From the NCBI GenBank assembly GCA_047495785.1, contig JBLDXI010000020.1:3162001-3226000 (forward strand): a stretch of DNA of 64,000 bases. The letters are read 5' to 3'. Numbering within the stretch: the stretch's first letter is position 1; every line of letters begins with the position of its first letter. The notes under the pieces were generated by a model. That model was not told the DNA's origin and made no database searches. It saw nothing but the letters and a program-made list of their open reading frames with translations. The stretch is from Lepidodermella squamata. Taxonomy: Eukaryota; Animalia; Gastrotricha. This document shows positions 1 to 13,570 of this stretch, piece after piece. A program made the position numbers and the translations under genes.

Positions 1-1256
1 GGTTGGTGCCCGACCTCTCATTTTTTCGCCCTCAAATATTTTCTTTCATCGATATGCTCCCGTTCTCGACGTTTTCGCCATCAGCAACGTCGATTCCACT
101 AATTCATGTCAATTAATTTTACCCTGATTTACTTTTTTCAAGAATTTTTTCTAACTTTGAAATTCCAAACCAAGGTCGTAGGTTGGTGCCCGACCTCTCA
201 TTTTTTCGCCCTCAAATATTTTCTTTCATCGATATGCTCCCGTTCTCGACGTTTTCGCCATCAGCAACGTCGATTCCACTAATTCATGTCAATTAATTTT
301 ACCCTGATTTACTTTTTTCAAGAATTTTTTCAAACTTTGAAATTCCAAACCAAGGTCGTAGGTTGGTGCCCGACCTCTCATTTTTTCGCCCTCAAATATT
401 TTCTTTCATCGATATGCTCCCGTTCTCGACGTTTTCGCCATCAGCAACGTCGATTCCACTAATTCATGTCAATTAATTTTACCCTGATTAACTTTTTTCA
501 AGAATTTTTTCAAACTTTGAAATCCCAAACCAAGGTCGTAGGTTGGTGCCCGACCTCTCATTTTTTCGCCCTCAAATATTTTCTTTCATCGATATGCTCC
601 CGTTCTCGACGTTTTCGCCATCAGCAACGTCGATTCCACTAATTCATGTCAATTAATTTTACCCTGATTTACTTTTTTCAAGAATTTTTTCAAACTTTGA
701 AATTCCAAACCAAGGTCGTAGGTTGGTGCCCGACCTCTCATTTTTTCGCCCTCAAATATTTTCTTTCATCGATATGCTCCCGTTCTCGACGTTTTCGCCA
801 TCAGCAACGTCGATTCCACTAATTCATGTAAATTAATTCTACCCTGATTTACTTTTTTCAAGAATTTTTTCAAACTTTGAAATCCCAAACCAAGGTCGTA
901 GGTTGGTGCCCGACCTCTCATTTTTTCGCCCTCAAATATTTTCTTTCATCGATATGCTCCCGTTCTCGACGTTTTCGCCATCAGCAACGTCGATTCCACT
1001 AATTCATGTCAATTAATTTTACCCTGATTTACTTTTTTCAAGAATTTTTTCAAACTTTGAAATCCCAAACCAAGGTCGTAGGTTGGTGCCCGACCTCTCA
1101 TTTTTTCGCCCTCAAATATTTTCTTTCATCGATATGCTCCCGTTCTCGAAGTTTTCGCCATCAGCAACGTCGATTCCACTAATTCATGTCAATTAATTTT
1201 ACCCTGATTTACTTTTTTCAAGAATTTTTTCAAACTTTGAAATTCCAAACGAAGGT
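1..1256. repeat. 180-bp tandem satellite, about 7 near-identical monomers (runs off the left edge)
   Basis: Sequence repeats with exact 180-nt period (ggttggtgcccgacc at 1, 181, 361, 541, 721, 901, 1081) with only scattered SNPs; identity breaks at about 1256. Confidence 0.98.
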
Positions 1257-1561
1257 CATTTTTTTGAATTTTAGAATTTCGGAAATTTATATTAGCATTT
1301 CATTTTTTTTTATTTTTTCTCTTTTTTACCAGTTTGCGAATCGAATGACCGATGTTGCACATGCTGTAATCAAATGGCTGAAAACGATTTCAAGACGAAG
1401 TGATTTGTGATTTTTCAAACGTGCTACTTCATTTGAACGTTGTTTACCAGCTTTGCTGTATGATGCTTTTTAAATTATATTGTTCCAAACCCCATTTTCG
1501 CTGACCCAGGCAGTAATAGGGTAGAGATGCCGTCTCAATGCCCGGCTATGCAGTTAAATAG

Positions 1562-1957: not shown

Positions 1958-4900
1958 ATGGTGAAACCGCCTAATTGGAAGCCAAAATCGAAGGGATCGC
2001 GTAAGTGTTCCTTTTGCAAACGGAAAGGTGTTCGAATCTCAACCCACTGCGGACTACTCAATTGCTCTAAAGCTAAAGGGCAACACCATCCCAAGCCGTG
2101 CATTAAGGTTCAACCTCCACAGTCCGCTTCTCAGTCCAATTGTATGTTTTCCTAATCAATCAGTTATATATGTTTCATCTGTTTTTACACAGCCACGTCG
2201 TGTTCGCATGTTGGCGAATCTTTATCGGTAGCTCCATCCTCACTCACTGTTCAGAATACGTCTCAGCAGTCGTTGATATCTCAAGGCTTGTTCTTGTTAT
2301 TCATCCTCAAATTGTATAAATTTGCGATAAAATTTCCCCATAGGTAGCGGCGCTGTTCTGACTGCTTCGGAGCAATTGTTGGATTCTCAAGGTCAGTAAT
2401 TTTTATTTCTCAACTATAACTTGACATGTGGCTGTGCCGTTCCAGCTGTTCCGGCTACCCGGGAAGATCCGCTGCCACCTCCGGGTTAGTTGTTAGATTG
2501 AGATTTATTTCATGTCTTGAGCGAATACCACTAAGCTCTTTTAAGAATTATAAGAATTGAAGAGGTGTTAACATATGATTGTTATGTCATTTAGTCTTGT
2601 CAAATAATATTTTCAGGCGCTTCTTTGAACGAACGGCAGGAATCTAGCGCGCCTGCAACACGTCAGCCAGTAACTCAGCCATCTTGTCCAGTATGCGGCG
2701 CAAAAGGCAGGAAGTATCTGACCCACTGCGACAATGAGGAATGCCGGATTAGTGGCCGCGGGCATCACGCTAATCCCTGTTTCCAGTTGGAACGACCCGG
2801 GCTACAGGCCGGTGTAAATCTTGAGCAGCAACGTAAGTATTATCCACCGGGTAACAACCTTTCATAAATAATGATTCATTTAGCTGTGGCGTCCTCTGGA
2901 GCTGTTGCTGCTACGTCACAACGGTCGCTGCCATCTATAGGTTAGTTATTTAATCAAGAATTGTGCTGCCTGGTGTTAACTAAAACTGCTGTTTGTTGCA
3001 GCTAGTGGTGGTTCTTCTAATGCACCTATTCTATGTGACAACTGCAGAAGACGATCGGTGCCCTTTTTCGACATCGACATTGCTGTCGTGGAAGAGCCGG
3101 TATCTGGACGCAGCTATGGTGCTCTAGGACTAAGGAAAGTCTATGAAAACTGCTCGTTATGCCGTTGTTGCCGTCACTATTTGCGCAACGGCGATGCTCG
3201 TTTTCCCGCCGGATGGCCAGCCCTTGTTTATAGCCTTTTCTTCAAAGCAGCGAATAGGCACCTAGCAGAGGCCCTCTCTAACTACATATCGCCGCTCATG
3301 AAAATGATGTGGAGCGAGGTCGACGGCTCAAATGTTATGCGGGACTCGCAGCCGTGTTTCGTTGACAAGACACGTGATCTGGCTGATTTCATGGCCAATA
3401 TCTACAAAGACGCAGGTATTCTATCAACCTACTAAATGAGTATACGAATGCAGTTTTTTTTTTAATTGCAGGAGGATTCAGTTACGCGCTAAACATGTAC
3501 CCAGTGCCCGACGTGATATGTCCGCAAGGTTGCCTCGCTTTCATGGAGAAGTGCCAGCTAATCCCGTACCATCATTTGATCCAACATGTCACTGGCAGCA
3601 ATTTCTTCGATTCCGACTTGCGCTGGTTCGAGTCAAGGAGACCCGACTGGCCGTGCAACCCAGTGCCTTTCCTCGCTTGGGATTTCGCTGCTGCAATGGT
3701 CATGGACGAGACAAAGGGCCTATGCATCCTTGCCTGCATTGACCACAGCAAGCCGGACCTGTTTTCCATGTACCTGCATCTCCCTGCGAATCCCGAGTTC
3801 GACCGGTTCCACGATCCGCAGCAGACCGAAATCTATGCACCCGTGCACGTGCAGCCCAATTTCGTCAGAGGCGGGCGAGTCGGTCAGTCGAACGCATCAG
3901 TGCCAGTGACAAAAACTCTGGGTGATCAATTAGGTGTCGGCAGCTTTACATTGCGTGGTGCTCACTCGGCAAATCGCAAGGCTTTGAGCATGTACGCCAG
4001 CGCCTTTAAGCCACACCTTTTGGCCTTGCGATATCGTCCTGAGATTCGCAACACCGCGATCAGCAGATTTGGCGAGGAACACGTGGCTCACGTTCTTGCT
4101 GATTTTGATCAGCATTGCCCAACTGCTGTCGTGAGAAACCATGTCAAGGGTGGCACTTTCATCGAGCTAGCTGACTGTTACTTCACCTGGGCTATTCGCC
4201 GCAAAATCGCGACAGGTCAGTACATTTCATTCTTAATCTACTACTATAGATTAGACTCAACAGAATTAGCACTGCATTAATTTTGCTGATAGTGATAGCC
4301 TTGTAATCGGGCCCTGCACTGAATTTTAGATGCGTTTTGTCCAATATAAAATTCTCCAATATAAATGGTCAAAGAACGGATGTAGCAACTGTAGTAGAGT
4401 ATCGCGCGGGATAACCACTGCAAATTATTATGTAGTGTACTTCGGGAGGATAAGATTAGGCCGATCGAACTGCTCCAAATTCTCGATATAATAAACAAAT
4501 ATAGAGATACTAAGATTCAAGCGCATTAACAATTCATCATCGATTCCTACGAATTGTCTCATTTCGTCCTTCTTTATTTTAGGAAGTGATTCGTCGAAAA
4601 AAGGGAAAACACCTTCAGAAGCCGTGATCTTCAATCCGGTTCACCCGAACGATGATCATGGCTTAATCCCCTGGGCGTTCAAGTCGGGTCAAGGCGACAA
4701 CCCTAGTCAGCTCCTGACACTGGTTGCCAACGTCGTTTCGTTGTGCCGCCCTGTGTACCGTGCGGCGTTGAGTCATCTAGTGCTTGGCAGTCCCGATTTA
4801 ACACGCGTCGACATCGGTGACTTGCTCAGTCATACTGTTTCGCTGCCGCGCCCGAAAACCCCTCGTACTCTGAATTTGTCGCATCTGGCAAGGGACTTCT

Positions 4901-7900
4901 GGTCACTGACAGAACCCGAAAGTGATAGCGGATCTGACGATGACGAAGAATCCCCCGATGTCGTTACGCGGGCATTAACTTTGATTGGGAGAGTTACTGC
5001 GCCGATTAATGATGTCGAGTTGTCGTTTGCTGGATCTCATCTTTTAGCGATAAGAAAGGGGCAAACCATGGACGGCGAAAGAAGGAGTCTCCGAAGTCAT
5101 GGTGAGTGTTTTATTCATATTTTGGCAATTATTGCTGCATTATTAGACGTTGTGGTGATACATATCATGATCTTGGGTCCTGAATTTCAAAATTTACTGG
5201 TTTTAATCAAAAATTGAAACAACAAAAAATTGAGGGCTCCCATTCAAGTTATAATGACGTAAATCTTGAAATATTGAGTAATTTTCAAATCGTTTGATTC
5301 ATACCTAGATAACCCTTGTTTATTTCGTGTTGACAGTGGGTAGGGTGCTGGTCATCCACGGAGGTCAATCTCAGCTGCTGACCGAATACCAGACTTCGCA
5401 TGAGCTGCTGATGTGCCGACCCGAAGGTGCCTTGCCGATCAATTGGCCCGCATTGCCCTTGTCGCTGAAAGCTGGTCATCACCTGCTACTTGCCCGCGTC
5501 AAGTTTGGCTCGAAATCCTACATCGTTTTTCGATGGTCGCCTAGCTTCAGTGGCTGGTGGACAGTAGAGCCTAGCGGGCGAGTGGTTCGTGGTGTCAGTG
5601 ATCAGCACATGCGCTCTGACGTCCAATTTGCGATTTACGCTCTGCCTGGCAACCAGACGTTCTGCAATCAAGCCGTCCGTCAATCGCTCGGTGGTCAAAG
5701 CAAGGCTGCCTGCGAAATGCATTTCGACTCTGTCGAGTTCAACTTCACTCTTATGAAAGTGCCGGTGAAACATAAGGTGAAGTGTTGCATGCGATCACCG
5801 GGAAGAGCCAATCAATGCGGCAAACCTGCTCAGTTGCGCTGTCCTGCGGGCTTGCAGAATGGCAGCTTGTCGTGCAGTGTCGGCATCTGCACGCGGTGCT
5901 TCAAGAAGCTTCCAGCGGACGGTATCACCAAGCTCTCAGCGCCTGACTTTCTGCCTGATGTGCCTGAAGATGCTGAATTGCAACTGTCAGCTAGCAGGGC
6001 ATCGAACTTGGAAGCTCAAGCCGACGAGGTTCCGCCGCAGCCTGAGCAGCTTCATTTGGCTACTGATATTCAATTTCCTCGAGGCGATGCTGAGCCGCTG
6101 TATGATCCGACCAAGGGTATTCTCGCCAAGTATCTCTGGCAGCACTTGGGAATTCTGCAGCGAACCAGGCTCGCTTTCGATTCTGCCCAGAAGTCTTTTC
6201 TACTGCAGCAGATGGTTGCCTTCGGAGATGCCCCTGCTACTTCCATCTTGTACCCGGAGGGTGCTCTGTTTCCGTCACTTTTCTATTGCCAACGTGATGG
6301 CAGTGTTGTTGGTGCTTTGCCTCACCATCACTACTCGTCCTACAACTCCGACTATACAGGTGGAATCGGCTCCCTGTCTGATCATGTCAAAGTCAGGTTG
6401 CGCAACTTCTTCTTGGCAACAAGCTGGTCGTTTGCGTCAATCTACTTCTCCTTTGACATGAAGCTATCGGCGCAGCTGAACAAAAACAGCACTGCAATCT
6501 TCATGAAGCGTGGGACAGAAGGCCTGGCAGGTAAAGGCGCTGTTGGCTGGTCTCCTCCTGGCACGGCTCTCGAATACGAGGAGTTCGACAAGGAGTCGAG
6601 GCTGAAAGAGCTTGGCGCCCTAATCAAGCATGAAGAATGGAAGTGGTTCGGGACAATTACTTGTAATGATACAGGTTAGCACAAGTTTTGGTATTCAATC
6701 TCACTCAATTGTAGACTGAATAATTTCTCCAAGAATTGTTTGAAATTTGAAATTTTACCACCTCGACCTACACAATGCATTATTTTTCAATTCCAGGCAC
6801 ACCTGGTGTATGTGAAATCGTCAAAGCCCTTATGATAAACGCTCAAAGGCACCATGGTCCACGCCCTGTTCTGTCGAAGGCCGACTATCAGCGAACTTTT
6901 CGTCAGCGTCTGCTCCTTGTTTCAAGGCTTGACGAGACCGAGTACAAGCGGCTGTACTACGCCCATTTCATCCTCATCAGCATGGCTTGGCAACGAGTGC
7001 AGGAGCATCTGATCGAGTTCCTGAAGCGCACGAATGTTGTTGGCACTGTCACCACTATTTTCGTCAGGAACGAATTTCAGAGCGAATCACTCGTTGGCAA
7101 CAAAAGTCATCTGCATATGGGCATTTCAGTACGCGAAAGCCGGGCAGAACTGCTGGAGAAAGTTTGCTGTGATCCTCGTGAATTCTTCTCGGAGCGGTAC
7201 GGCACGTCATTCGACGAGCTTCAGCGCTTGAGGTTGGTCGAGAGCCGAGATCACTTCGAGCTGCTCAAGGAGGTCCATTACCCCTTCCAACGTCACGAAT
7301 GCGAGAAAGCGTTTTGGAAATGTCAAGTTCCACGCGGCGAAGGAGGGGAAATGGTTTGCCGAGTTCGCCAGCACGGCGTCTCCAGCAGCGGCTATTTCGA
7401 AGAATTCCGCAACGTGTACTCCGAGGATACCCTGAAAGAGCTGCAATCCCTAGACCTCGCCAGAGAAGTGCCCAATCCCACTGGCGACTTTGACTGGGAA
7501 TTTCTGGCTGATCAGCTCAAGTCGGGCGTGTACCACTACGCGATCAAGCATCTCGAGAAGGGCGTGAAGTTCATTCCGCAAATCCCGATCATCGCGGCAA
7601 TGATGGGCGGCTCCACGAACTTTCAGATATGCGATTCTCATTTCAGCGTATCTTACCTGACGAGCTACGTTGCCAGCTCCGACGCTCGCCCTGAAGCTTA
7701 CGCTGCAACGACAGATGTTCCGGGCCAAGTCGTTGCTTTGTTCCCTGCTGGTTTTGAGCGAGGTCAAAAGCTTGCTAGTGTTCGGTGAGTAATATCTTTG
7801 CACTTCAATTGACTTGAAAAACTTTGATGTTTTTAGGAAAGTGATGGAAGCGAAGCTGAAGCATTTCCGTCGAGAAAGCATGCAGAGCTTTATCTTCATC

Positions 7901-10900
7901 GCCTTGACAGAAGTTGCTTGGTTCGCGTTGGGGTTTCCCTACACCATCACGAATGTCGGTTTCGTACACATCAACACACACCCACCAGCTTCGCGGCTAA
8001 TGTTGTGGCGACCGAAAGAAGCAGTGAAAAAGCGACTACCGGGTATGCTCTTGAGAATAGTTATTGTGATTATTTTCAAATAATATTCCAAAAACAGGTA
8101 CAGATGTAGTTGCTGTCGACCCAAACTACAATCGCCGGGGCCTGCCTCAGTGGCGCTTGTTCACGGAAGCATGCATTCGTCTGATCATGAAAATGAGAGG
8201 CACGAATCTGCTAGCTGGCCCTGTCGAGAAGTTCGAGATTCGACCTCCCGAGGCTCGTATCTTTGCGTCACCTGCTATCTATCACGCGGTGTTCGTCATC
8301 GACCGGAAAAACCGACGACCATACAACCCGATGGTCGATCCTTACATCCGTTTTTTCGACGGCTTCAAGCGGGAGGTCCGAATCAACGATTGCAGTTTGC
8401 GCATCGCGCTCGACTATCTGGCTCAGCAGGACCAATCCAATGCAGCCGTTCAAGCACTCACGGAAATTTTCGAACTCTTGGTCGAAGGCGATCCTGTCTA
8501 TGTTGACCGGTAACGATCTTTACGTTTTTATAATTTTCGGAATATTTCAAATGTACGCTGAACTAGGTACTTGCACGTCACAAATAAGGCGGCGATAATT
8601 CCAGTCCTATCCACCATCTCTCCGCTCAACCGCTTCAACTTCTTGTATCACGTCGTCATGACGTTTGGTCGAATCGAAGATGAGGCTACTACCTTTCCGG
8701 CTGGGCATCTCCGGGCGGCATTTGTTCGATCGGGGCTCATTCGGGTCAATCCTGAAGGCGAGCCGACCAACCTTCCTGCCGACGTGAGGTCTCTGAAGCG
8801 TCGCGTCATTCTCGAAATCTTCGCTTTCCTGCCAATCGGTGTCAAGAGATTCGATTTTTACGTCGCCACTCTGAAATCCATGTTCGAGCAGTTTTTCTTT
8901 GGCGATGGAGGCACCGACAATCTCTCGGCACTGACTGACTGGGATGCGATTGAACGGGAAGTTGACGAGGATATTGTCCGAGCGGAAGGAGAAATGAAGC
9001 GGTCTGTGGTTGAGGTGACGCATTCGCAGCTTGTCGGGAAATTGCCGCTACCACCGCTGTCGGATTTCACTGACGCTACATCGTGTCAACCTTTGGAATG
9101 GATTCCGAGTCTTCAACGACAACCAGGTCAGTCGGACCAGTCTTTCCAGGAGCAGCAGGCGGCTCTGGCTTTCGGTATGAAGACACTCGAACGCTTCCGA
9201 AGCAGAGCTAGCTTCAAGCACATCGCACTGGTTGGTCCTCCTGGGGCTGGAAAGACAACGCTGGCGCAGATCCTTGCCATGGTTGCCGTTTCTAAGGGAC
9301 TACGAGTTGTCATTACTGCTTTGACCTCGGAGCGAGCACGAGTTCTTGGCGGTCGGCACATCCACCTGCTTTTTCCTTTGCCGGTTAAGCAAATACCGTA
9401 CAAAAATGTAATGGCGTATGCTGACGGCTGCCTCAAGAATCTGTGTTTCAAGACTACGCCGTCTGTTGTCCTATATCGGGCTGACGTCTTCATCATCGAA
9501 GAAATTGGGCTGGTCTCTGCTGAAACCCTGGAAATCTTGGACACAGTTATGAGGAGTCTTACAGGTAAGCAAACCAGCATTCAATTATTACTGGTATTTA
9601 TAGTTTTCATTAGGAGTCGATGCGAAAATGGGTGGCAAATTGATCATTGCTACCGGGGACTTTGCTCAGCTCGAGACGATCAATGGTGAGAGTTGATTTA
9701 TTGCAATACTAACATGTATATTGTATTTGTTTTTTTTAATTATCCCAGGTCGATCCTTTTGGGAATCAACACAATTGTACCTCAGCTACGACGTCGCATT
9801 GTTGAAACATTTCGTTCGGGCTGCCACTGACCCGCTACTCCAGCGGGTGCTGTTGATTTTGCGGCAAGGCGTTCTTGACGAGATTGACCGGGACTTCATC
9901 CTCAAAGCTGTGACTAGAACGTGCAACTTTTACGACACTTGGGACAACGTTCCGTTCCTTGTCCAGCGGATCGTCCCAACAAGAGAAGCTGAACAAGAGG
10001 TTAGTTGGAAACGGAAAATTTTGGTGATCACTCTTGCCTTTCATTAATTGATCAGGTCATTCGGAAGTTCCTGCAAGACGCTAGTCTCAGTGGCAAGACT
10101 TTGAAAACAGCTCTATGCATCGACGAAGTAAACACGCGTGGTGCCTGGGAACCTCTTCACCGTCCCGAATGGAAAAAAGCTATCAACAAACAGTCACTCA
10201 AGCCCGAGAACTTAACGCTCTTTGTTGGTGCTGTGGTTGCTATGACCTACAATCACGTAGCGTCGAACCCGCAACACTCCTTCTCCCAAGGGCAGCTAGC
10301 TCTGGTGACGCAGTTGCCGGAAGACATGGCCGCACCGGATGCCAAAATTTCTGTCCGCTTGGTTCCTCCAGGGCTGCGTGACATTGCACCAGATGAGGCT
10401 TGGCCAGAAATAAGTGTGGGCCGGCATCGGGACGATAACATTGTTGTTGGCGACAACAAAACGCACCTGCGTCGTGTTCAGTTTCCGCTGCGGCATTACA
10501 TTGCCTCGACTATTCATCGTGAGTGCTAACCTTGTTTTTATATTCAAGTATATAAAAATGTTAATTGTTTTCAGGAATCATGGGTTCTACCTGCGAGAAC
10601 GGCGTTGCAGCCAAGATTGCTTCCAACGAGAAGGTACGTATTGCGAACAATAACTGTGGATATTGATATGTTCAATGTACTGTAATGAAGGGCTACGTGC
10701 TATGGGAACGGGCGCAGCTTGCTGTCATTCTCTCGCGGTGCCGTTCACTTGACCGTGTGTCATTTGTTGGCGAACGCGCAGACATCACTGTGGCCATCGA
10801 AAGGCTGTTGATGGCAGTCGATGAGCCATACGAGGCTATCGTCGCATCGCTGCAAACGCTGGACGTGCTGCCTACCTCAACAGTCGCCAGTAACTGGTCA

Positions 10901-11825
10901 GCCGGACGACAGCAGCAGGTCAGCGACCCCGACGAACTGCCCGACATCACGTTCCGCGTTTTACGAACAACTTCCGGGTTAGTCCACTTACTTATTTGGC
11001 TCTTTGTATAGTCAACTCACTAATTGCGTATGTCCCATTATATATCGAGTCTTGACAGTTCATATTTCTATAACCATTTTATTATATTTCAAAATAGAAT
11101 AAGTCGAACGTTTTCAAGAAAATTTTTCTTATAGATCATTCACGATCGAGCAGCTTGGCGATGCTCAAACTTCCATCCCATTGTAAGTATGGCATTGTTC
11201 ATCTGCTTTATATACTATTCAAAACTTCTTCATAGCCCTGCAACCGTTGACCAGGCAAGCTCCTCCGATGCGCCTGTTGTCCCACGGTTAGTATAACCTA
11301 TCAATTCCATTTCATTGCTTCAAATTCTGCTCAATTTATCAGAGTGCCGACATTGTTGGACTTCTACCGCGTCGTCGGTCCTGATTTGTCGGAACGCGAG
11401 CCCAATGGCGTCGTTTATCAATTGGTGGAGGTGGCTCAGCCGTGGGCCAGCTACTTTGGCGAAACCGAGCAAGCGCCTCTACAGCGACTTTATGACCACA
11501 ATCACAGTAAATACAAGAGAGACTAAAAAAATCGAACTGCTAACATTTGATTTCAGATGCAGGGGCCGCGATGACTCGCGGCAAGCAATGGCATTTGTAC
11601 GCCGTCGCTCGTGGCTTGCCTGATGACGAAACCAGGTTGAACCTGGAGAAAAGGTGCCAGGACCTTATTACAGCGCAACCTGAGCTTTTGCCGTGGCAAG
11701 TTAGGACCAAATTTGAGTCCTACGTGGACGACATCAACGCTCGCCTGCATGGGTCCACTGCTGTAATTCGTTACGGCGAGTTGGACGAGGCTAAGGTTCA
11801 CCGCCTGCGTATGATCTCCTTGTGA
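1958..11825 (+). CDS. Multi-exon (about 24 exons, about 2,600 aa) Helitron-like RepHel protein with C-terminal GIY-YIG endonuclease
   Basis: Rep motifs WFGTITCN (about 6645), RNEFQ...SHLHMGI (HUH, about 7070-7125), QRHEC..C, SYLTSY (about 7650). PIF1-type helicase motifs GPPGAGKT (9234), FIIEEIG, GDFAQL, RVQFPL..ASTIH, VILSR. GIY-YIG-like VVYQL..SYFGET..QRLYDHN..GAAMT..W..NLE (11400-11650). GT-AG junctions from about 3415 to 11556 were checked by hand and keep frame; the 5' mini-exons (2190-2940) are less certain. Confidence 0.88.
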
Positions 11826-12512
11826 GTCAGCTGATGGATGTCATTCTTTTTACTCAATCCTTTCACTTTTCAGCACGTCGACAATTAGAGTAGCACCGGC
11901 GCCACCGTCAGCGCAAGAAGAAGCAGGTGAACTAATCGACCAAGATCCGCCCCCAAAGCGGTAAATAGATTTAAGTTCACATTTGCTTGTAGCTTTTTAC
12001 TATTATTTTCAGAATTCATCTCGCAAATAATTGTTCGCCGTCTTGATGTTTCTGCCGATCTTCCGATAAATGAAATGTTCCAATTCAATGTTTTTCCTAG
12101 TAGTAGCCAATAAACGTATCGCACTTTTTCTAATAGTGTTTATTGAATCAGAGTTATCAGATCGACTTGACTTAATATGAATCAAATCGCCACGAAACCG
12201 TAATTTTTCTGATCCTTGTGCTTCGTCCATTATATAATTTTTCTAAAAGATTACCTAACCTCATTGCCATGCTCTTGGCTCTGTGGCAACCGAACCATAT
12301 TCATCTCACAAGTTGGCACTATAGTTGCTTCCGGAACCCACCATAAAGATGACAGATCTTAGTTTCAAGTTTTTCCATTGCATCACCATTGCTAAATCAA
12401 AATCCATCAAATAAAAATGCTTCCCTGCGTAAATCTATAATTTCAAATCTTAATCACGGAAAATAGGGTTTATATCAAATCAAATCAAACCCAAAGCACT
12501 GATGAGAATATC

Positions 12513-13256
12513 AAATTTCAAATGTCATTAACACTGGGGTGAGGGGGAGCCACCGTCCCCTCCAACGACGTGGAGGGGATCTCCAAGGGGTGGTTCGAGT
12601 CCTTACCCATTACCCAGGAGAGTGGAGAAAAAGAAAGAAAAGGCTAGCGCAGCGTAAGCCTTGTCGAACTCTCCTGGATGGGGGCGCGACTCTGGGAGTT
12701 CCGAAGGAACGCCAGTTCCTTTACGCGTGTTTTACACATACGCCGTAGATTACCACGAACGAAGTGAGATTTCATCCCAACAGGGGGGCCCGAGAACGCG
12801 TTGGTTAACAGGACATACTCCGATCGACTTGCCCGATTTATGGTGGTATCCTGGACCCCTCAGGACCTCCCAGAAACTTTTTCAGCTCAATCGGACCTTC
12901 CGTTGATTTTCTAGAAATTAGGACGGTTTTTACCTATTTTACCGTATTTTTTAGTCACGTGACCTGGAATGGGTAGTATACGACAGGACAGTAGGAGGAT
13001 ATGATAGGTACACCAAAAAACAAACCACGCTGACCAAAGCTTCCGAGCCAGCTGACAGGCTGGCCCCTCGCCCCTGGGGGAGAGGGGCCCCACAATAGCC
13101 CGCGACAAAAGAGCAAACGACAAAAAGGCAATATAAATAAAAGTCAAGGTCGATTGAAAAAACCTGCGGCAAATTGTTTGTGCATTTTGCACATTAATCT
13201 ATGGGTTTACCCGTAATCGACTACGGAGAATCCGAATATGAAATCCATTTTATTAT
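12513..13256. repeat. Structured GC-rich dispersed repeat, copy 1
   Basis: Aligns with 18385-19160 (long identical tracts such as caccgtcccctccaacgacgtggaggggatctccaaggggtggttcgagtcc); several hairpins. Confidence 0.9.
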
Positions 13257-13319
13257 AAAGCAATGATAACCCCATGATAATCCTTCCTAAAGTTTTCTGG
13301 CTCGCGCGGCTGCGTCGCA

Positions 13320-13570
13320 CTCGCTGAAAGAGTTGCGTAACTTTCACCACCTAACGACGCCTCGCTGAGATATGAAACTTCGAACAAGCACAACAAGGTT
13401 TTTTCCAACATGTTCAAGCTGACAGCTAGAGTTTCGCAATACAGGTTAGTCCACAAATACAGAATACTACCTTTGAAAACCAACTTCTTTGCAATCACGG
13501 CGACATTTCATTTCTTGTGAACGATCAACAGAATCATACTTATTCGTCGTTATTCAGTCGGTATTCAGTT
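13320..13570. repeat. About 250-bp segment duplicated at about 14493-14748
   Basis: tcgctgaaagagttgcgtaactttcaccacctaa ... cagaatcatacttattcgtcgttattcagtcggt occurs at both places. Confidence 0.85.

Follow-up and report, generated by a model that had tools for sequence, protein, structure and literature searches.

A 64,000-nucleotide (nt) stretch of the genome of the gastrotrich Lepidodermella squamata (assembly GCA_047495785.1, contig JBLDXI010000020.1, positions 3,162,001 to 3,226,000 of the forward strand), referred to here as the window, was analyzed for a Helitron-like transposase gene. An earlier, sequence-only reading had placed at 1958-11825 an apparently intact gene that fuses an HUH Rep, a PIF1 helicase and, at the C terminus, an endonuclease of the GIY-YIG type. 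The gene was found to belong to an autonomous rolling-circle transposon from a widespread, barely described branch, and it extends from 1958 to 12046 on the plus strand. Its parts are as follows.

1958-2940 (+): exons 1 to 6, a low-complexity N terminus with two similar Cys/His-rich motifs, in exons 1 and 5
3002-6600 (+): exons 7 to 10, a clade-specific N-terminal region of ~950 amino acids (aa) with conserved Cys/His
6653-7784 (+): HUH Rep (Y2); motif 1 TITCN at 6653, motif 2 EFQ...HLH at 7072-7116 (EFQ 7072, HLH 7108), motif 3 YLTSY at 7654
9234-10745 (+): Pif1-like SF1B helicase, exons 14 to 19; Walker A at 9234, IIEE at 9492, TIHR at 10509
11407-11654 (+): SLX1-type GIY-YIG domain, exons 22 and 23; GVVYQL at 11407, YFGET at 11452, LEKR at 11643
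11874-12114 (+): exons 24 and 25; stop codon at 12044-12046, AATAAA at 12109, coverage by the spliced runs ending at ~12114

Spliced translation from the ATG at 1958 to the TGA at 12044-12046 joined 25 exons into a protein of 2,678 aa with no internal stops, which bore out the claim of an intact gene. The introns comprise 23 of the GT-AG type and one of the GC-AG type (2286-2343), with a median length of 56 nt and a GC content of 0.31 as against 0.53 in the exons. The end of the gene had been misplaced: the stop called at 11823-11825 lies inside the donor (GTGAGT) of an intron at 11822-11873, a second overlooked intron lies at 11961-12012, and the earlier interval leaves the protein 39 aa short. 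Both introns were spliced out in contigs of runs X2 and X3, as were, in the predicted manner, those starting at 9565, 10000, 10519, 10634, 10978, 11183, 11287 and 11507. These contigs backed 10 of the final 11 introns, the exception being intron 15, which was absent among the joints listed; the evidence covers the 3' part of the gene, with introns 1 to 13 and 15 outside the listed joints. Contig 19 of X3 joins helicase exon 19 to GIY-YIG exon 22 (GVVYQL...YFGET), supporting the proposal that Rep, Pif1-like helicase and GIY-YIG domain share one transcript; since this contig spans from the helicase into the nuclease exon, a separate transcript for the GIY-YIG exons is ruled out. Exons 7 to 19 were backed by colinear homology to long relatives with the same order, while no homolog support for exons 1 to 6 was obtained in the comparison with relatives.

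Searches were run exon by exon, and the joined 25-exon model was used for the frame check and the motif positions. All the Rep, PIF1 and GIY-YIG motifs named previously were located at the positions given for them. The Pfam scan of the window exons detected the helicase only; neither the Rep exon alone nor exons 22 and 23 taken singly gave a Pfam hit or a phmmer match to the Protein Data Bank (PDB). Because Pfam and phmmer are blind to the single Rep and GIY-YIG exons, family profiles were needed. Among solved structures, the family Rep profile had Helraiser (PDB 7LCC; E = 9e-5) as its sole match, and the helicase family profile scored Helraiser at 87.5 bits, below bacterial and yeast Pif1 (105 to 122 bits). 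The protein carries the three motifs of a Y2 HUH Rep upstream of a Pif1-family SF1B helicase, both hallmarks of the Helitron-like superfamily.

The C-terminal domain was examined with a profile of the relatives' C termini, against which exons 22 and 23 ranked as the top two of 1,730 six-frame window pieces (E = 6e-5 and 8e-4) and gave hhalign values of 91.6% and 83.8%, respectively. VYQL, SYFGET, RLYDHN and LEKR aligned with the family columns (the Tyr-x10-11-Tyr-x-Gly hairpin, the Arg...His-Asn helix and the metal-binding Glu), and the catalytic Tyr, Tyr, Gly, Arg, His, Asn and Glu are retained. SLX1 was the top match of the clade profile (E = 3e-16; UPF0213, 1e-7), and the predicted model of a relative's domain, that of the window being divided between two exons, folded as SLX1 (Foldseek E = 2e-6). 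The GIY-YIG assignment therefore stood; among the three types named for it (SLX1, UvrC and Penelope), and within the range of the solved structures, the predicted domain resembles SLX1 specifically and not the UvrC or Penelope types. While SLX1 (with the plant protein HIGLE) is the best match in both profile and fold, the clade has the catalytic domain only, fused to a transposase, with no match into the C-terminal part of SLX1. SLX1 is a cutter of 5' flaps and branched DNA (titles of PDB 6sei and 7cq4); by analogy, such cutting is the most likely predicted activity of the clade's domain.

A search with the Rep exon yielded 125 relatives, many of 1,500 to 3,600 aa. Those with named hosts came from Cyprideis torosa (ostracod), Styela clava (tunicate), Myxine glutinosa (hagfish) and Priapulus caudatus (priapulid) and the remainder from contigs of metagenomes or sequencing runs; among the relatives found, no match was named as a ciliate. 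Relatives reached the thresholds of the Pfam families Helitron_like_N, PIF1 and GIY-YIG, which follow one another in this order. A GIY-YIG-like domain was present 21 to 45 aa past the helicase in 67 of 70 complete relatives, a count covering ostracod, tunicate and metagenome contigs; the hagfish and priapulid proteins are also clade members. Walker B EE, TIH(R/K)xxG and LSRV were common to the relatives. The proposal of a divergent rolling-circle clade was supported with respect to EE and TIHR, which are clade-wide, while the third deviation cited for it, YxxSY in Rep motif 3, is a minority variant of the clade form YxxKY. Decay was ruled out as the origin of the odd motifs, since they are shared across the clade. 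A score gap separated the family (at least 159 bits) from other proteins (at most 156 bits), and in a helicase tree a 100/98 branch set the clade apart from other Pif1-like helicases, exon 14 being placed beside the Cyprideis protein. The position of the clade among Helitrons is beyond the scope of this tree, which was built without HLE1 or HLE2 references; homolog searches for HLE1/HLE2 sequences brought up clade members and other Pif1-like helicases and nothing else. An N-terminal OTU-like protease domain was seen in relatives P0006, P0054 and P0057 (above the Pfam cut-off in P0006 only), and none was detected by Pfam scan in the window protein.

The gene is followed by an array of related units that runs into a broken tRNA gene.

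1-1257 (+): 180-bp satellite, 7 copies at 98%
12524-12678 (+): block at the 3' end of the autonomous element, with a G/C-rich hairpin, a hairpin with a GCA loop and a 10-bp stem (CCAGGAGAGT/ACTCTCCTGG); last bases CTGGA, followed by T
12679-18549 (+): unit 2, a non-autonomous relative, TG...CTGGA, packed with satellite-like repeats
18550-21711 (+): unit 3, a related unit, TG...CTGGA, with a minus-strand open reading frame (ORF) at 20106-20747
21712-27061 (+): unit 4, more distant, containing a decayed piece of a Rep from the same clade at ~26110-26270; ends CTGGA
27062-27100 (-): 5' half of tRNA-Gln(TTG), interrupted within the anticodon arm; marks where the array stops on the right

A structured block ends in CTGGA^T at 12678, 18549, 21711 and 27061. 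The first two 3' blocks shared 94% identity to the left of the junction and 52% to its right, with the drop exactly at CTGGA^T. The terminal block of the autonomous element had a folding z score of -3.0, and an exact search for its hairpin in metagenome contigs found none. At the right boundary, the tRNA-Gln half was 99% identical to an intact copy to the right of the cut and 53% to the left, and the intact copies (33490-33564 and later) represent the empty site CGCTGGA^TTCAAAG. An Rfam scan of 1-27300 detected the broken tRNA and one chance-level match, and nothing else. The 5' end of the element lies to the left of the window; the satellite at 1-1257 is related (65 to 75%) to the degenerate repeats of unit 2, and we infer that it probably lies inside the 5' non-coding region of the element.

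Relatives from other samples bore out the junction motif independently, with mixed pairings of ends and starts. L006 and L008 (97% identical) part right after CTGGA/CTGGG+T, two L002 copies diverge after CAGGGA+T, and L001, L003 and L010-L013 contain head-to-tail arrays joined at CTAGG^TG, with 12 such sites in L001 as compared with 3.3 expected. All nine delimited units start with TG (the 5' end of the present element being outside the window), and the longest exact inverted match between their ends was 5 nt or less. Further features of the Helitron-like superfamily seen here are a hairpin in the 3' subterminal region and ends that are defined but lack long terminal inverted repeats. Complete autonomous elements with both ends readable were observed at L010:1012-21234 (20.2 kb), L003:7260-20901 (13.6 kb) and L001:7390-19516 (12.1 kb), and these are good references for the clade. 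In the present case, sister copies at 88 to 99% were present in a DNA run, and 18 of the 26 listed coding differences were silent, which fits purifying selection during spread. Recent activity, previously suggested from the lack of stops, is plausible given these related copies, rather than established. The termini, sister copies and arrays rule out a domesticated host gene.

The ends and domains were compared with those of known systems. HLE1 elements start with 5'-TC, end in CTRR-3' and insert at A^T. The clade shares with HLE1, represented by Helraiser (7LCC), a Y2 HUH Rep ahead of a Pif1-like helicase, a 3' hairpin, an end beginning with CTR and a T after this end. It differs in starting with TG instead of TC; in ending with CTRGR plus T, similar to but one base longer than CTRR (A^T in the window, G^T in L001, L003 and L010-L013); in a target that carries the element's own end motif; in three extra residues in Rep motif 2 of many members; and in the helicase motifs EE and TIH(R/K)xxG, the C-terminal GIY-YIG domain and the private N terminus of 950 aa. 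HLE2 elements have asymmetric terminal inverted repeats of 8 to 15 bp, T^T (or TTTT^T/C) targets, DUF6570 and, in Helentrons, an APE endonuclease. A large RepHel protein with an extra C-terminal nuclease, OTU in some relatives and satellite-filled non-autonomous derivatives are common to HLE2 and the clade. The nuclease of the clade, however, is an SLX1-type GIY-YIG and not APE, asymmetric terminal inverted repeats were lacking in the nine units, and the empty site here is CTGGA^T and not T^T. DUF6570 and APE were absent in Pfam scans of the window exons and seven full-length relatives and in precomputed lists. By its sequence, the element is Helitron-like in its core but falls outside the rules of both HLE1 (TC start) and HLE2 (asymmetric terminal inverted repeats, TT target, DUF6570, APE).

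The combination of RepHel and GIY-YIG has already been reported once, so that the architecture, which the earlier reading did not confirm as undescribed, has a precedent. One HLE2 family that has captured a GIY-YIG, HelenSM92 of Sphagnum magellanicum, is named in the HELIANO study (PMC11417382) and described as a single family with short terminal inverted repeats and TT sites; the comparison, including the status of the GIY-YIG as a fusion, is by description only. The same study lists at least four unclassified clusters, among which the present clade may be hidden. No description of the lineage, the SLX1-like fusion or the CTRGR^TG junction was found in the literature searched, with Repbase, Dfam and most subscription journals outside the search. 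Closest in behavior, as judged by description and not by sequence, is the HLE of Paramecium (PMC13085455), a target-specific third clade outside HLE1 and HLE2 in its authors' tree. It likewise has ORFs of 9 to 10 kb, satellites between ORF and ends, non-autonomous derivatives and target-specific insertion, with a 3' end (CCAA) that matches the target repeat; it differs in targeting telomeric C4A2 repeats, in ciliates, and the main text of that report makes no mention of GIY.

These data are best explained, with moderate confidence, by an autonomous Helitron-like transposon. It would belong to a deep lineage in which the protein always has an SLX1-type GIY-YIG domain at its end and the element's termini take the form 5'-TG...hairpin-CTRGR-3'. 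The gene, its 3' splicing, the domains, the motif at the junctions and the head-to-tail order of the units were observed; the mechanism below is derived from them. The Helraiser mechanism is established for HLE1. By analogy with it, the Rep would nick at the 5' T, the helicase would peel off one strand, and a second Rep cut after CTGGA would close a circle whose junction, CTGGA^TG, equals the array junction. The Rep, to which target choice is assigned here, would then integrate the circle at chromosomal look-alikes of its junction, CTRGR^T. Every insertion would make a fresh target at its own 3' end, where relatives would stack; such own-end targeting would account for the satellite-filled head-to-tail arrays. 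The anticodon arm of tRNA-Gln (CTGGA^TTCAAAG) carries the same motif and may have seeded this array. The SLX1-like domain would act later, as a structure-specific nuclease on a flap or branched strand-transfer intermediate, helpful but not strictly required in cis.

Several points weigh against this interpretation. It is drawn from sequence data. The cut is placed before the T by analogy with HLE1, and whether this T is element end or target cannot be read from the sequence. The left boundary of the array is outside the window, so the other tRNA half is unseen, and the 3' block of unit 4 was only weakly like the other three (15 to 43 of 500 shuffles scored as well). Runs X2 and X3 have no record as RNA, and their contigs may stem from sister copies. 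The replacement of YxxKY by YxxSY in motif 3 may have an effect on the Rep, and intact relatives could supply the nuclease in trans to elements whose own copy is degenerate.

The alternative that survived best, although it is unlikely, is that the GIY-YIG was captured as an accessory and serves only for binding or structure, any cutting being performed by host repair nucleases. About half of the relatives have lost catalytic residues and yet keep the fold, the Asn is present in all 60 relatives compared, and extra domains are regarded in the HELIANO report as non-essential captures (PMC11417382). The GIY-YIG is also in a separate reading frame, directly after the helicase, in L010-L013 (L010:16551-17159), four copies that are 97.7 to 99.96% identical; this frame could reflect an intron or a programmed frameshift, and a second GIY-like fragment was observed at L010:18125-18430. 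However, the full catalytic set is intact in 31 of 60 distinct relatives at 20 to 45% identity, as well as in the present copy, which argues for long-term selection on catalysis.

Next in order, and again improbable, is that the target is cut by the GIY-YIG, which would also determine specificity in the manner of the Penelope-like GIY-YIG or the R2 endonuclease, while the Rep only excises and joins. Cutting of the target or processing of the intermediate was the role first proposed for this second nuclease. Across the clade the domain is fixed and its spacing from the helicase is constant, and the target motif is longer than that of HLE1 or HLE2. The nearest solved relatives of the domain, however, are structure-specific SLX1 proteins and not sequence-specific homing or restriction nucleases, and the target is the element's own end, which the Rep must recognize already. 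Moreover, the motif is kept beside degenerate domains: the GIY-YIG of L003 (P0129) lacks R and H but sits among the same junctions, so that a role in target choice is doubtful.

A dedicated tRNA-Gln-targeting transposon, with stacking due to reuse of a regenerated site, appears very unlikely. The model would be Dada or Pokey, DNA transposons in multicopy RNA genes, with some Dada families using the tRNA anticodon arm (PMC8869645); the present insertion is likewise in a multicopy RNA gene, but those elements use DDE transposases. The array does stop exactly at CTGGA^T in the anticodon arm, while CTRGRT occurs only ~0.5 times per kb in the region. Nevertheless, the window has six other Gln(TTG) copies, together with Gln(CTG) copies, and all of these are empty. 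In 13 loci of other samples, no intact tRNA gene was called close to the element ends (with a search for Gln fragments in L001-L003 only), and the short motif by itself accounts for the site. Targeting of tRNA, seen here at one locus, is probably a by-product of this motif. Rolling-circle concatemers or segmental duplication in place of targeted insertion, tandem Helitron concatemers being known in plants (cited in PMC11934779), were largely refuted and the concatemers rejected, since adjacent units are unlike in size (5.9, 3.2 and 5.4 kb) and sequence and, in L001 and L010-L013, the same 3' end is joined to different 5' starts at CTAGG^TG.

The reading of an autonomous transposon with own-end targeting could be extended, tentatively, to a separate major class of eukaryotic rolling-circle elements beside HLE1, HLE2 and the Paramecium clade. 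Such a class would insert at copies of its own end with a specificity of at least 6 bp and would complete integration with an SLX1-like nuclease that it encodes itself; in this animal, one branch would use the anticodon arm of tRNA-Gln as a safe site for homing. The element itself is real, intact and spliced, and possibly represents such a separate class. How Helitrons complete integration and what extra nucleases contribute are open questions, and Heringer and Kuhn (PMC8788227) describe the function of the Helentron AP endonuclease as undetermined. The clade constitutes a natural test, as about half of its members keep and half have lost the SLX1-like catalytic residues, while this copy is intact and spliced. 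The ends of the clade are readable to the base, and its targets appear to copy the element's own end. As the Rep is missed by Pfam and the ends lie outside the HLE1 and HLE2 rules, standard annotation probably overlooks this widespread lineage.

Other features of the protein and the array were noted. No Pfam match above cut-off was obtained for exons 7 to 10. The segment at 3474-4214 encodes a clade-specific, probably zinc-binding domain with conserved Cys/His (CPxGC, CxxxxH and HxP) and a confident predicted model, to which the structure searches returned no relative. For exon 8, the predicted fold was confident (predicted local distance difference test score, 85.5) and no structural match was found by Foldseek, VIA-align (best Z, 3.4) or Atlas (TM score, 0.28 or less); this is no proof that the fold is novel. 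Exon 10 had no usable match in Atlas. The 5' starts at 12680-12790, 18551-18660 and 21713-21820 contain short hairpins with GNA triloops (ccGAAgg, ccGTAgg and ccGGAgg), with folding energies not above those of shuffles. Within unit 2, segments 13321-13618 and 14493-14793 are 81% identical, which suggests a nested or duplicated internal segment. The satellite-related degenerate repeats (13800-18230 and 1-1257) contain GGTTCGAACCC, similar to a tRNA T-loop or B box, and the satellite may be derived from a tRNA or a short interspersed element. ORFs in units 3 and 4 lie at 20106-21100 (-), 22434-23198 (-) and ~24970-25770 (+), two of them apparently split by introns. They are possible accessory or captured genes; none had a match in the fetched loci, and the two scanned (20106-20747 and 22434-23198) gave no Pfam hit, leaving an SSB/RPA identity for these two unsupported. 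A bacterial promoter scan, which does not apply to a eukaryote, was at chance level. Beyond the array, 27260-63000 consists of tandem cassettes of tRNA genes in near-identical repeats spaced 3.4 to 6.0 kb apart and covering most amino acids, and past these, in AT-rich DNA at the right edge of the window, is an ORF of 211 aa (62954-63589, -).

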